Assembly (NCBI RefSeq): GCF_006345805.1
Contig: NW_021826660.1
Coordinates: 1-13,421, forward strand
DNA length: 13,421 nt
Source: Octopus sinensis
Taxonomy: Eukaryota
Direction: 5' to 3'
Positions within the stretch are counted from its first letter, which is position 1; every line of letters starts with the position of its first letter. Below the pieces are notes generated by a model. That model saw only the letters and a list, made by a program, of their open reading frames with translations, was not told where the DNA came from and did no database searches. This document shows positions 5,979-12,755 of this stretch, piece by piece. A program made the translations under genes and the position numbers.

Positions 5979-6138
5979 GAGTGTGTAGATGTGTGGTAAA
6001 TAGCTTGCTTATCAATCACATGGTTTCGGGTTCTGTCCCATTGCGTGGCACCTTGGGCAAGTGTCTTCTTCTATAGCCTCGGGCCGACCAAAGCCTTGTG
6101 AGTGGATTTGGTAGGCGGGAACTGAATGAAGCCCGTCT

Positions 6139-6180
<42 letters not shown>

Positions 6181-8237: not shown

Positions 8238-8436
8238 TACTCTTTTACTTGTTTCAGTTATTTGACTGAGGCCATGCTGGAGCACCGCCTTTTAGTCGAG
8301 CAAATCGACCCCAGGACTTATTCTTTGTAAGCCTAGTACTTATTCTATCGGCCTCTATCGCCGAACCACCGCTAAGTTACGGGGACGTAAACACACCAGC
8401 ATCGGTTGTCAAGCAATGTTGGGGGGGGGGCAAACA

Positions 8437-8496
<60 letters not shown>

Positions 8497-8639
8497 CGAC
8501 GGGCTACTTTCAGTTTCCTTCTACCAAATCCACTCACAAGGCTTTGGTCGGCCCGAGGCTCGCCCAAGGTGCCACGCAGTGGGACTGAACCCAGAACCAT
8601 GTGGTTGGTAAGCAAGCTACGTACCACACAGCCACTCCT
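8238..8639 (-). mobile_element. Full-length SINE family B, low divergence, with a small internal deletion
   Basis: Minus-strand head AGGAGTGGCTGTGTGGTACGTAGC...GGGTTCAGTCCCA. Internal (CA)n/(TA)n at 8438-8496, tail AGTAAAAGAGTA. It lacks the roughly 16-nt ATAGAAGAAGACACTT-like segment present in the 5979 copy. Confidence 0.92.
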
Positions 8640-8754
8640 GCGCAATATGTATAAAAATCCAAGAACTGAAATAGAACCATTGGCACAAATAGGTTTCGAG
8701 AGACATATTAATGGTTTTGTATTTTCACAAAAGGGCAGCAATTTTGAGAGATGG

Positions 8755-8926
8755 AGTAAGTGGATTACACTGACCCCGGTGTTAAAATGATAATTATTTC
8801 ATCGACCCCGCAGGTATGAAAGGCAAAGTTGACCTAGGTGGAATTTGAACTCGGAACGTAAGGACGGACGAAATGCCGCTAAGCTTTTTATCCGACGTGC
8901 TAACAATTCTGCCAGCTCGCCACCTT
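8755..8926 (-). mobile_element. SINE family A, head and body, tail truncated or diverged
   Basis: ATCGACCCC..GGTATGAAAGGCAAAGTTGACCTAGGTGGAATTTGAACTCGGAACG...TTCTGCCAGCTCGCCACCTT. Confidence 0.85.
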
Positions 8927-9049
8927 AGACATATATGTCACTGCGCGTGTGTGTGTGTTGGAAAGACTAACTCTTTATATGAATGTATATGTACGTATAC
9001 ACACACAGAAATGTGCTTGTGTATATATATATATACATAAGAGCACATA

Positions 9050-9240
9050 AGAGCAAAACAAGGTGATAAGAAATAGTAATTGAATACAAAAGGTAAACTA
9101 ATATACTTTTTATTAAAGTCGCAAAATCAACACAGAAATGTTATTCAAAGTTTCACGCTTCCGTTCATCGAAGACTGGTGATAAATATTGCTCGACGAAC
9201 TGGAAGATGAAACCCTGAGTAACAGCAGTTTTAATGAAAA
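9050..9240. mobile_element. Probable Penelope-like element terminal fragment in inverted (fold-back) arrangement, with two degenerate hammerhead-like motifs
   Basis: Arms TGTTATTCAAAGTTTCACGCTTCCGTTCATCGA (9139-9171) and TCGACGAACTGGAAGATGAAACCCTGAGTAACA (9192-9224) are imperfect inverted repeats. Outer similarity extends to TTTTATTAAAG (9107) and TTTTAATGAAAA (9240). Each arm reads CGAYGA-(stem II)-GAAAC. Confidence 0.6.
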
Positions 9241-9321
9241 TTATATATATATATGTGTGTGTGTGTGTGCTTGTGCGTGTGTGCGTGTGTGTGTGTGTGT
9301 GTTTGTATGAGTTTGTGTGTG
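9241..9321. repeat. (AT)n/(GT)n microsatellite
   Basis: Directly visible. Confidence 0.95.
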
Positions 9322-9530
9322 AGATCTGGCGCCGGAGGGCAACTGTAAAATGTGCAATCCATAGACACTATTGCATGGTTCGTTCTGCTGCGACTAAAGC
9401 GACAATACTATCGAGGCTTCTTGTTAGAAACATGAACTTCCGAAAACCATGCAGCAAGGAATTGAAACCTTGTCAGAGGGCAGCGGATGAATGATGGAGA
9501 ATAATAAACATTAAAATTTGGTACATAAGT

Positions 9531-9613
9531 GCATACATACATATATACATACGTATACATACATACACACACACACATACATACTTACATACATACATAC
9601 ATACATGCATACA
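9531..9613. repeat. (CATA)n microsatellite, the sense-strand (TATG)n tail of the adjacent LINE 3' end
   Basis: Directly visible; it abuts the 3' end of the 9613-9806 fragment. Confidence 0.93.
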
Positions 9614-9806
9614 TGAAGACTGGCCGTTGCACGAAACTTAAATGTTATTGGTGCTATGATTGAATGTGACTTTTTAGCCCAGCTAAAGATCTACAATTTC
9701 TTGTACAGAATTGGCAACAAAAACCTTTACCGGTAATAGCCGGCTGTAGTTGTAACTGGGCTTCATGTACCTTTGCATGTCGTTTAAGTCCTCCTGCCGA
9801 ATTACA
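9613..9806 (-). pseudogene. Extreme 3' end of RTE-type LINE ORF2 (C2H2 zinc fingers) plus short 3' UTR
   Basis: The minus frame 9806-9654 reads CNSAGGLKRHAKVH-EAQLQLQPAITGKGF-CCQFCTRNCRSLAGLKSHIQS*H. This is one partial and one complete C-x2-C...H-x3/4-H motif of the CxxCxRxCxSxxGLxSHxRxH type found at RTE ORF2 C-termini. Confidence 0.75.
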
Positions 9807-9875
9807 CATCCATCCATCCATCCATCCATCCACCCATCCATCCATCCATACATACATACATACATACATACATAC
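9807..9875. repeat. (CATC)n/(CATA)n microsatellite
   Basis: Directly visible; it is the sense-strand (TGTA)n/(TGGA)n tail of the 9876-10520 fragment. Confidence 0.95.
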
Positions 9876-10520
9876 AAGCATAGTGGCTGCTTTCTTGTAT
9901 ACGAGCGAAGCTATTGATGGAAGGAATCAGTGATGCAATGCGAAGCCCTTGTATGACTCTTGAGCTCCGCCAAATATTTTCACATTGTATTGCACAATGC
10001 ACAGCTGTGCTGGCTGGCAGAGGGAACAGGTGCCACAGTAGGAACTCTTTTGACACACCTTTTTCAATCCTCAAACTGATAGACACAGCTTTACATTGAT
10101 TGCACATGTTCTGTTGTGAACGATGGCCATTTCACAATTTACGAGGGGTTGATTCCTGTGAGTTCTCTGATTGCTGACCAGGCTTGCATGACTCAAGTAT
10201 TTCTTCCCGCAAATCATACACGTAAAAAGCGCGACACTCCTTCATTCTTTCTAATTCCTCTCTTGATCTTCTCGGGCTTCATTCTCTTTTTCAAATTTCG
10301 AACAATCACTGTGCATTCTTTCCCACTGTCCATTCCTCTCATGTGTCTCCCTCTATCAATCAACAACTAAAACTCCTATCTATATCAGAGTAATTCTGGA
10401 GCAGTCCTTGATGTTCATTTGGGGTTTTTATGTCCTGACCTCCTACCATCTTCCAGCTCGCTATACAGGAGTTTCTTAGGAAGACTTTCATTATTCATTC
10501 TCATCAGATGTCCATCCCAC
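9876..10520 (-). pseudogene. 5'-truncated, decayed RTE-clade LINE: ORF2 C-terminal region with three C2H2 motifs
   Basis: Manual minus-strand translation from 10519 gives WDGHLMRMNNESLPKKLLYSELEDGRRSGHKNPK*, matching the RTE post-RT signature WxGHxxRMxxxRLPKxLLYGELxxGxR. After frameshifts it gives ...QWERMHSDCSKFEKENEAR...FTCMICGKKYLSHASLVSNQRTH...TCAINVKLCLSV*GLK(fs)RCVKRVP...HSCALCNTM*KYLAELKSHTRASH...*(9911). Confidence 0.88.
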
Positions 10521-10642
10521 ATCATACATACATACATACATACATACATACATTTGTCATTCTGTTTCTCTCTGTCTCGTCTCTCTCTCTCCCCTTTCGC
10601 TCACCCTCTCTCTGTCTGTCTGACAATCTCTCTCTTTCTCTC
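10521..10642. repeat. (CATA)n followed by (CT)n/(CTGT)n
   Basis: Directly visible. Confidence 0.92.
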
Positions 10643-11084
10643 CTTGGAGTGCGTGTCTTACATTCAACATTTCAAATTAAAAACAGATTAAGGACGTTTT
10701 CGTTACGGCATTCGGGTTATCACAAACGTCTGCAACACTGAAGTACCATCATATATTTAGTTCCCTCACTGGTTACCAACACTGTCCGTGTCACCGTATA
10801 CTTCGTTGAAAAAAAATAACGGTCTGTATCTAAGACGCTGTCTAACACTTTAGAACTCAAAAGAAAGACAGGAGGTACAAATATATCCAGGTACCTCGTC
10901 CCTCTAAGAATTTGGCCAATTCAAAGCTGTAAACTAGTATAGACATAACTTAACTTGCCTAGTTTAAAATTTACATAAAAAAAAATTGAACTCATAAAAA
11001 CCATGGAACTTCCGTCAATTTATGCGAGTTTACGTTGGTCTCAACGAACATATTTAAGATCATGAATATTTTTAAAAGGTACTG

Positions 11085-11265
11085 TTCTATATTTTGAGAT
11101 GAGGAATTCTGTGCATTATTTACATTATTTACATTGGACGGATCAGCCGATTTGTTGTTAACACAACATTTTGGCTGATTTATTCTCCATCCTTCATCAG
11201 GTGTCCTGGTGGAATTTTGAACCCAACCCTGGGTCCTCATTCATAAGGTATCTTTTTCTTAAATC
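11085..11265 (-). mobile_element. Probable Penelope-like element terminal (pLTR) fragment containing a hammerhead motif
   Basis: The minus strand reads GAATGAGGACCCAGGGTTGGGTTCAAAATTCCACCAGGACACCTGATGAAGGATGGAGAATAAATCAGCCAAAATGTTGTGTTAACAAC...AATGTAAATAATGTAAATAAT. The CTGATGAAG...CGAAAC-type terminus is characteristic of PLEs; the family is recognised by recall. Confidence 0.65.
11160..11206 (-). ncRNA. Decayed type I minimal hammerhead ribozyme
   Basis: Stem I ACAC (11204-11201)/GUGU (11164-11161); intact core CUGAUGA (11200-11194); stem II GGAUGG/UCAGCC (5 of 6 pairs). AAAAUGU stands where GAAACGU is expected (two CpG-type transitions); predicted cleavage triplet GUU. Confidence 0.65.
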
Positions 11266-11319
11266 TAAAAAAAAATAATTAATGAAGTAGAAAAATAATG
11301 TAAAATACTTGCGAGAATG

Positions 11320-11650
11320 TTCAGACAGCGGCCATGCTGGGGCACCACCTTGAAGGATTTTTAGTCGAATATATCAACATCAATACGTTTTATTACCATT
11401 TTAAAGCCTTGCTATGCTACATATTTTATTGGTTCACTTTTGCCGAAGCGCTTATTTACAGCGACGTAGACAAACCAACACCGATTGCTGATTGGTGGTA
11501 GACAAACACACACATATATACGACGGACTTCTTTCAGTTTCCGTCTACCAAATCCACTCACAACGCTTTGGTTTGTCCGAGGCTATAATAGAAGACACCT
11601 GGCCAAGATGGCACGCAGTGGGCCCAAACCAGGTAACATGTGCCTTGAAG
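11320..11650 (-). mobile_element. Older, diverged SINE family B copy
   Basis: GCGGCCATGCTGGGGCACCACC...ATACGACGGACTTCTTTCAGTTTCCGTCTACCAAATCCACTCACAACGCTTTGG...GAGGCTATAATAGAAGACAC aligns to 8238-8639. Confidence 0.85.
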
Positions 11651-12380
11651 TGTTCTTTTCGTGTTACGTCCTTTTTCGAGTTAAGTCGGATATATCTTGA
11701 AAGCAATTACCAACGTATGCGGATGCAAGTATCTGCTATATTTAATCGACATTGATAAGATCAAAGACCTCAGCAGGATTTGCATCCTGATCACAAAGAT
11801 CCTGAACAGATACAGCAGATCATTTCATTCCCGGAGCTCATGACACTGTATTTAGTCCCCCTATTTGACATTTTGCACAAGAGTTTGATAAAAAAACAGG
11901 GTGGGCATAGCTGGAATGTCTTTTACCAGAATAACAAGGAGCACACGAATAATATAGCGGTGACATCTTTAATCTTATAACAAAGTTACATCCCACAATG
12001 CACTTCTAGAAGAAATCCATTGTCTATATATTAAGACCCGGAAGTTTAAATCCTTCAACATTCTAACAATAAATATACAAAAAAGCCCAAGGGTTAAACA
12101 CATGTTGAAATCATATAATTTAAGTATAAGCAAGATTGATTTTAACTGCCATGGTTTAGGGGATGATGAAGTGATTGAAGTACCAGTAATATACCCTCCT
12201 CCAAAACAGGGTCTTTAGCCCAACGTTAAATATCAATATATGAGACCTATAGATTTTTCTATATAACAATATACTATATTAGTACGGCAATGCCGAACGG
12301 AAATACCGAAATCTTAAGATGTGTGTATATGTTTGTTATCACGTATATATATATATCATAAATCACTGATCGGTGATTGT

Positions 12381-12425
12381 CATACGCTGATGACGGGCAA
12401 ATACTCAGAAACTCGGGTCTGTGTG
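12381..12425 (+). ncRNA. Type I hammerhead ribozyme, near-intact
   Basis: Stem I CAUACG (12381-12386)/UGUGUG (12420-12425), 4 WC plus 2 GU pairs. Core CUGAUGA (12387-12393); stem II CGGG/CUCA with loop CAAAUA (12394-12407); GAAA (12408-12411); self-complementary stem III ACUCGGGU (12411-12418). GUC cleavage triplet with C17 at 12419. Possible distal stem I GUGAU (12373-12377)/AUCAC (12427-12431). Confidence 0.85.
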
Positions 12426-12594
12426 TATCACGTTAGGCTGGAGATGGAAACGATGACTTCCCTTTGCAAATACTGACAGGGCACAGATAGTGTGTCGATA
12501 GCCAGCTGGAGGAGGTGTCTTTCTGGGGCTACAAGCTACAGTAGCGTCGACACTTAAGGGTTAGCCACATTAGTTGGAAATATACTACTCACGA

Positions 12595-12755
12595 TAATAT
12601 ATATATTATATATATATATATAAATAAGATACAGATGTATGTATGGTAAGGTAGATGATTGTTTTTTTTTTTTGGCAGTATATATACATATGTATATATA
12701 TATATTACATATATATATATATATATGTATATATATGTGCTGTACTATATGTATG

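Follow-up and report, generated by a model that had tools for sequence, protein, structure and literature searches.

Type I hammerhead ribozymes are widespread in invertebrates. In the canonical metazoan form, helix I has 6 bp and helix II has 4 bp, the two interacting via conserved nucleotides in their loops. Helix III is reduced to 1-2 bp with a palindromic loop of 2-4 nt (in invertebrates, typically two base pairs and a tetraloop), and the ribozymes act as dimers in tandem repeats. Such canonical motifs reside in non-LTR retrozymes, i.e., tandem repeats of 150-450 bp that are expressed as circular RNA (circRNA). The hammerheads of Penelope-like elements (PLEs) are described as "minimal" variants, with a helix II of 7-8 bp, a helix I of 4-5 bp and no helix III. 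For PLEs, (TA)n is a documented and preferred target. A first-pass annotation of the DNA described here had stated that type I hammerheads occur in PLEs and in non-LTR retrozymes and often cleave as dimers, and these statements are correct by the published descriptions. Because the spread of these ribozymes among invertebrates is already known, and because 235 Rfam Hammerhead_1 loci have been reported in the genome of the giant squid, the novelty of a hammerhead in a cephalopod is modest.

A Type I Hammerhead Motif in Octopus DNA

Direct reading of the window, i.e., the whole 13,421-nt stretch of Octopus sinensis DNA that was analyzed, places a type I hammerhead motif of 59 nt at 12373-12431 on the + strand. 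Its sequence is GUGAU-UGU-CAUACG-CUGAUGA-CGGG-CAAAUA-CUCA-GAAA-CUCGGGUC-UGUGUG-U-AUCAC, and its elements are listed together with those of the flanks in Table 1. All of the elements reported in the first-pass annotation were present at their positions, with those of the core in the right order. The core is complete, all 13 of its nucleotides being intact (the CUGAUGA and GAAA boxes, U12418 and C12419). Of the 18 modelled pairs, 17 are able to form, and helix I is open, which is the type I topology. Two of the pairs in proximal helix I are wobbles (U12383.G12423 and G12386.U12420), the second of which adjoins the core. The pairs of helix II are, in order, a C12394.A12407 mismatch at position 10.1-11.1, then G-C, G.U and G-C. 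Given the complete core, the tiny self-complementary helix III and the signature formed by loop II and the helix I bulge, the motif is a genuine type I hammerhead, as had been proposed.

Table 1. Positions of the hammerhead elements, the surrounding unit and the flanking repeats within the window
Feature	Positions	Strand	Remarks
Left direct repeat, TCACG-(TA)n-C-ATAAAT	12339-12363	+	
Hairpin AAUCAC-UGAUCG-GUGAUU	12361-12378	+	Perfect 6 bp; in minimum-free-energy folds; competes with distal helix I
Distal helix I, 5' strand GUGAU	12373-12377	+	5 Watson-Crick pairs with AUCAC 12427-12431; aligned to the R2 distal helix
Helix I bulge UGU (U-R-Y)	12378-12380	+	Putative partner of loop II in tertiary contact; opposite U 12426
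Proximal helix I, 5' strand CAUACG	12381-12386	+	6 pairs with UGUGUG 12420-12425, 2 of them G.U
Core box CUGAUGA (C3-A9)	12387-12393	+	Exact; invariant in hammerhead alignments A1 and A4
Helix II (CGGG 12394-12397 / CUCA 12404-12407) and loop II (CAAAUA 12398-12403)	12394-12407	+	
Core box GAAA (G12-A15.1)	12408-12411	+	Exact match
Helix III, ACUCGGGU	12411-12418	+	A12411-U12418 (A15.1-U16.1), C12412-G12417, tetraloop UCGG
Predicted cleavage site, 3' of C17 (C12419)	12419-12420	+	Placed by alignment to hammerhead models
Helix I, 3' strand: UGUGUG, single unpaired U 12426, distal AUCAC	12420-12431	+	
Remainder of the unit, without the ribozyme	12432-12587	+	Unique in the window; folding stability unremarkable
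Right direct repeat, TCACG-ATAA-(TA)n-ATAAAT	12588-12625	+	

With a 6-bp helix I, a 3/1 internal loop, a 5-bp distal helix, a helix II of four positions and a 2-bp helix III, the candidate is, by its architecture, clearly a canonical hammerhead of the retrozyme type. Its loop II, CAAAUA, is also the consensus loop of Rfam family RF00163. The identity of this hexamer with loop II of the Schistosoma Sm-alpha hammerhead, previously given from recall, was confirmed in printed sequences. At the position of the helix I bulge, natural type I hammerheads carry UAC, UAU, UGC or UUC and the candidate carries UGU. The single U opposite the bulge is kept in hammerheads from axolotl and Schistosoma, in hammerheads L017, L042 and L064, and in the candidate. 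The elements of the tertiary contact between loop II and the bulge are, therefore, present as a sequence signature.

When set against the 45-nt consensus of RF00163 (aUccagCUGAcGAGUCCCAAAUAGGACGAAACGcgCGUCcuggAu), the segment 12381-12425 fits without a gap and shares the core boxes, the CAAAUA loop and the GUC site. However, the consensus has G-C at 10.1-11.1 where the candidate has C.A. The candidate also has several G.U pairs, and it remains below the gathering score of 34 bits. The Sm-alpha hammerhead of Schistosoma mansoni (and its engineered version, N79) shares the 6-bp proximal helix I, the four-position helix II and the CAAAUA loop. Its bulge is UAC rather than UGU, with a single U opposite in both, and its helix II is GUCC/GGAC, with G10.1-C11.1, and its helix III ACGCGU, whereas helix II of the candidate is CGGG/CUCA. 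Sm-alpha also sits in an abundant SINE-like satellite, while the candidate is present as a single copy in the window. With the hammerheads of the non-LTR retrozymes of coral, mussel and axolotl (Cervera and de la Pena 2020), the candidate shares the canonical type I form and a helix III of 2 bp with a tetraloop. Judged from these sequence comparisons, it is homologous to the class of type I hammerheads found in Schistosoma, newt and axolotl, and would be expected to share their mode of working.

The Flanking Repeats and the Origin of the Unit

The hammerhead lies within a unit that is bordered by microsatellites, a short (TA)n at about 12344-56 and an (AT)15 array, detected by Tandem Repeats Finder (TRF), at 12597-12626. 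Because the window is rich in (TA)n, such flanking microsatellites are weak evidence by themselves. The unit is also delimited by the direct repeat TCACG-(TA)n-ATAAAT (TCACG occurs only six times on the + strand of the window), which gives it a length of 224-249 bp, with boundaries that rest on this one flanking repeat. One possible reading of the repeat is that of a long target-site duplication (TSD) around a 224-nt insert at 12364-12587, with the hammerhead starting 9 nt from its 5' end. Alternatively, it may be the overlap produced by a unit of about 249 nt that is present 1.15 times. A retroelement origin fits either reading, the repeat itself being a post hoc observation.

The unit has no open reading frame (ORF) and a GC content of 46.4%. 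Its length of ~224-249 bp is inside the range of 150-450 bp stated for the monomers of metazoan retrozymes, whereas their stated GC content is less than 45%. The compact circRNAs described for retrozymes also differ from the candidate unit in folding stability, which was no better than that of shuffled sequences (z = -0.18 for the linear form and 0.08 for a circle permuted at the cleavage site). More generally, a stable hammerhead or a rod-like circle found no support when the motif, the unit and its circular permutation were folded.

Tandem arrays and abundant circRNA are the defining features of retrozymes, and at this locus there is one unit without a neighbor. TRF found no tandem array at the hammerhead within the window, neither blastn nor local alignment found a second copy of 12358-12596 in the window, and matches to decayed monomers up- or downstream did not rise above those of shuffled sequences. 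Tandem hammerhead-to-hammerhead monomers, which the first-pass annotation had envisaged, are thus absent from the window as searched by these three methods, the only repetition being the terminal repeat of 25-38 nt. Scans of metagenomic and viral sequences with the pattern CTGATGA-N4-CAAATA-N4-GAAAC returned 69 + 1 loci, among them many real hammerheads and no copy of the candidate's family. A six-frame peptide query of the unit gave no match in a collection of 5.8 billion proteins. A control (a translation of 8490-8790, a segment that overlaps a repeat with further copies in the window) and 10 ORFs of the window were also unmatched there, so that this negative result is uninformative on copy number. 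No real ORF was found near the unit, the downstream side having microsatellite ORFs only and no long one. The string YADD, seen in one frame across the core, is a mere translation of CUGAUGA and was dismissed.

Taking these results together, we favor, with a probability of roughly 70%, the view that the locus is a solitary, mutated canonical type I hammerhead at the 5' end of a non-coding unit of ~224-249 bp in or around (TA)n, and that it is the relic of a retrozyme-type monomer mobilized by a PLE. A (TA)n microsatellite would have received the unit as an insertion, or else a duplication around such a microsatellite would have produced it. The analysis shows the motif, its homology to the family and its solitary state directly, whereas the retroelement origin and the mode of insertion, like the inactivity discussed below, are inferences. 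In its living relatives, the non-LTR retrozymes, mobilization is thought to be by PLEs. Multimeric or tandem transcripts of these retrozymes fold with loop II docking on the helix I bulge, and the short palindromic helices III of two adjacent ribozymes pair with each other in trans, whereupon both ribozymes cut 3' of C17. The resulting monomers are then ligated to form circular RNA, reverse transcribed and re-inserted. In the present copy, the whole core and the tertiary-contact signature are kept, the 10.1-11.1 pair is lost, and the neighbor is absent. Should the host genome contain related copies, the integration of retrozyme or PLE cDNA into microsatellites could be studied at this locus, a clean solo insertion flanked by repeats.

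An unlikely alternative source of the hammerhead is a fragment of the pseudo-LTR (pLTR) of a truncated PLE, rather than a retrozyme monomer. According to the literature, PLE pLTRs carry type I hammerheads, most genomic copies of which are single motifs of truncated elements, and PLEs insert into (TA)n with odd terminal extensions. The candidate has the type I topology, the dimer-type logic of helix III, the frequent solitary state and the microsatellite target in common with them. In addition, since the derivation of retrozymes from pLTRs has been proposed, the two readings overlap. However, the PLE hammerheads are of the minimal kind, whereas the candidate has canonical helices of 6, 4 and 2 bp and the loop-bulge contact elements. 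A pLTR would also be expected to have, on the same strand, an adjacent ORF for a telomerase-like reverse transcriptase (RT) and a GIY-YIG endonuclease, but no Pfam family, including these two, was found in the three + frames of 9001-12596, and no long ORF lies downstream.

A more elaborate version of the retrozyme origin that we prefer appears distinctly unlikely. It holds that the unit belongs to an undescribed retrozyme family of the host with an unusual C10.1-G11.1 as its consensus, that this family is still transcribed and circularized, that the AAUCAC/GUGAUU hairpin serves as a switch masking helix I in the monomer, and that the locus is a recently integrated monomer flanked by a TSD. Were all of this true, the locus would record the insertion of retrozyme cDNA into (TA)n by the machinery of a PLE.

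The Condition of the Copy

The Rfam models, Hammerhead_1 among them, had been put forward as a check on the motif. Using cmscan, there was no hammerhead match in the whole window at the gathering threshold, nor was there one at the site at E<=10 in three nested slices of the sequence, including slices of 351 nt and 76 nt. Known hammerheads used as controls were detected with the same search (L017 at 47.2 bits, L011 at 36.5 bits and L064 at 35.0 bits), the gathering score of RF00163 being 34 bits, which the candidate does not reach. Since these controls were found while the candidate was missed despite its gap-free fit to the consensus, the curated model penalizes its defects heavily. The earlier label of "near-intact" has to be tempered on this account. 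It is generous in view of the C.A mismatch at 10.1-11.1, the silence of Rfam and a hammerhead fold that lies far above the minimum free energy (MFE).

Of the 18 aligned natural sequences, 14 have G-C at 10.1-11.1, where the candidate has C.A, and there are four G.U pairs across the helices of the candidate. Using nearest-neighbor energies, the hammerhead fold has a free energy of -5.1 kcal/mol compared with -13.4 kcal/mol for the MFE structure, i.e., about 8 kcal/mol above the minimum, and thermodynamic folding predicts a negligible population of the hammerhead. When the upstream context was included, the hairpin at 12361-78 sequestered the 5' strand of distal helix I. As AUCAC also occurs at 12427-31, and the 3' arm of the hairpin is shared, the hairpin and distal helix I are mutually exclusive. 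Helix III, paired in trans, is predicted to form an 8-bp self-duplex of -10.3 kcal/mol, similar to the values for real hammerheads (-11.7 kcal/mol for L017 and -8.9 kcal/mol for Schistosoma), and its UCGG tetraloop is one transition short of the palindromes UCGA or CCGG.

The defects at the bases of helices I and II had been attributed to decay of CpG dinucleotides. The contexts fit this proposal, A12407 lying in a CpA (12406-07) and U12420 in a TpG (12420-21), and CpG decay may have occurred. The proposal is weakened, however, by the reversion of A12407, which would yield C-G where G-C is usual, and by the CpG observed/expected ratio of the window of 0.86, which is a mild depletion.

Because the 10.1-11.1 pair has been lost, the helices are weak and there is no neighboring copy, we infer that this hammerhead is a relic that self-cleaves weakly, if at all. 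It is probably inactive. We go no further than "probably" because some natural hammerheads tolerate a mismatch where helix II meets the core. One of them is the axolotl hammerhead HHR_Amex2, in which the mismatch is U.U and which nevertheless gave 22% cleavage in one hour. The same precedent can be cited for a live or exapted ribozyme, i.e., an active member of an expressed retrozyme family or a domesticated, cis-acting hammerhead in a host transcript. The upstream hairpin would in this case serve as a folding switch. In its favor are also the retention of all 13 core nucleotides and of the tertiary-contact elements, and the competition between distal helix I and the hairpin at 12361-78. We nevertheless regard it as very unlikely: the C.A mismatch occupies a position that is G-C in most relatives, helix II retains three pairs, of which one is G.U, the window offers no partner copy for cleavage as a dimer, and a negligible fraction of the RNA is predicted to adopt the hammerhead fold.

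The candidate does not reach the Rfam gathering score, it lacks the 10.1-11.1 pair and it has no tandem repeat. It is best regarded as degenerate and solo, within the type I class. By itself, the locus adds one more such member to a well-described class of ribozymes and opens no new question. It does provide a case where a canonical animal hammerhead can be recognized by eye while the curated Rfam model reports nothing. Since a copy of this sort is missed by Rfam, decayed or variant hammerheads will be under-counted in genome annotations.

Resemblance beyond Chance

To estimate how often such a motif would occur by chance, we used a descriptor whose requirements did not go beyond what the candidate shows (CUGANGA, three or more of the four helix II pairs, a loop of 4-8 nt, GAAA, the 15.2-16.2 pair, UH, and six pairs in helix I). 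When both strands of the window were searched, only the site at 12373-12431 matched. One match was found in 300 Mb of random sequence generated by a first-order Markov model of the window's composition, from which ~1e-4 matches would be expected per window and ~18 in 5.4 Gb. At ~18 chance matches per several-Gb genome, the basic motif is by itself indecisive at the genome scale.

Two covariance models were then built, from both of which the candidate was left out. Model R1 (44 positions) was seeded with hammerheads from Schistosoma, from axolotl (two), from one coral and one mussel retrozyme (supplement of PMC7229834), and from one metagenome. Model R2 (59 positions) has the R1 architecture plus the distal helix, the 3-nt bulge and the opposite U, and was built from Schistosoma, axolotl and two metagenomic hammerheads. 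The alignment of these extended hammerheads was length-padded, the version made with MAFFT having misplaced helix III. R1 ranked the candidate first in the window with 23.1 bits (E = 1.8e-5), the runner-up having 10.7 bits. R2 also ranked it first, with 42.0 bits (E = 3.8e-12) and without gaps over 12373-12431, the runner-up having 10.1 bits. Natural hammerheads that were not among the R2 seeds scored 56.2 (L064), 36.7 (L011) and 35.9 bits (L007) with this model, so that the candidate is within their range. The corresponding Rfam scores were 35.0, 36.5 and 26.2 bits.

As an empirical null, 596 Gb of bacterial and archaeal genomes were searched with CTGATGA-N4-CAAATA-N4-GAAAC, the pattern also used in the metagenomic scans. 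There were 17 matches, about the number estimated to arise by chance, and 15 of these scored 19.8 bits or less or were unreported at E<=10. In a set of 18 natural sequences including the candidate, 84.9% of the cells were paired, compared with 58.7% after shuffling. Sliding the pairing partners along the alignment reduced this to 40% at most, and both sides change in 15 of the 18 pairs, so that covariation supports the modelled structure.

A chance resemblance in microsatellite-rich DNA, with the 3' strand of helix I provided by TGTGTGT, would be consistent with the silence of Rfam, with the ~18 occurrences of the basic descriptor expected in 5.4 Gb, and with R1, which alone would give a few chance matches per several-Gb genome, but it is scarcely credible, because the distal helix, the U-R-Y bulge and the opposite U raise the score to 42.0 bits (E of ~4e-12), loop II is exactly the consensus loop of the family, and the prokaryotic null, in conjunction with this score, excludes chance.

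Other Repeats in the Window and Hammerheads in Metagenomes

The window also contains six copies of a repeat of the form GGCGGAATTTGAACTCAGAACG...GACGAAATACC, at 22-91, 206-275, 883-952, 1099-1168, 1308-1377 and 8808-8877. Three of these are located in a tandem array at 834-1410, which has a period of 216 bp, 2.7 copies and 82% matches. No tRNA (ARAGORN) and no Rfam match was found in this repeat, and for this reason it is probably a SINE-like family of the host. Just upstream of the hammerhead, at 12284-12310, there are 2.1 copies of a 13-nt unit, ACGGAAATACCGA, that echoes the GACGAAATACC motif.

A second interspersed family is represented at 5985-6145 (+ strand), 8559-8635 (- strand) and 11514-11642 (- strand), with 82-86% identity, the copies forming the inverted-repeat pairs I1 and I24. 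The ORFs at 8416-8790 and 11485-11700 overlap this family and have a short peptide motif in common. The copy within 8500-8640 presumably resembles common Octopus repeats. On the minus strand at ~9650-10110, there are frame-shifted peptides resembling C2H2 zinc fingers (e.g., FCCQFCTRNCRSLAGLKSHIQS and CALCNTM.KYLAELKSHTRASH), which suggests a decayed fragment of a retrotransposon ORF.

Among the other hammerheads encountered, L071 (1791-1849) and L087 (3139-3197) are canonical, metazoan-style type I motifs that scored 57.5 and 50.4 bits with R2. Both are on a 2.77-Mb contig (CBDBCZ010000018.1) that is labelled as a Nitrospirales metagenome-assembled genome, inside repeats of ~350 nt that are 87% identical, and the site following helix III is GCU rather than GUC. 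They could derive from a eukaryotic contaminant or from mis-binning, or belong to a repeat of bacterial origin in which the motif is found. Finally, there is a metagenomic family with an extra unpaired U on the 5' side of helix II (CUGAUGA-U-GGCC-AAAUA-GGCC-GAAAC), the members of which are L047, L069, L004, L021, L023, L035, L055, L056 and L063. In L047 and L069, these sites occur as inverted pairs ~260 nt apart, an arrangement that has been described for PLE insertions.
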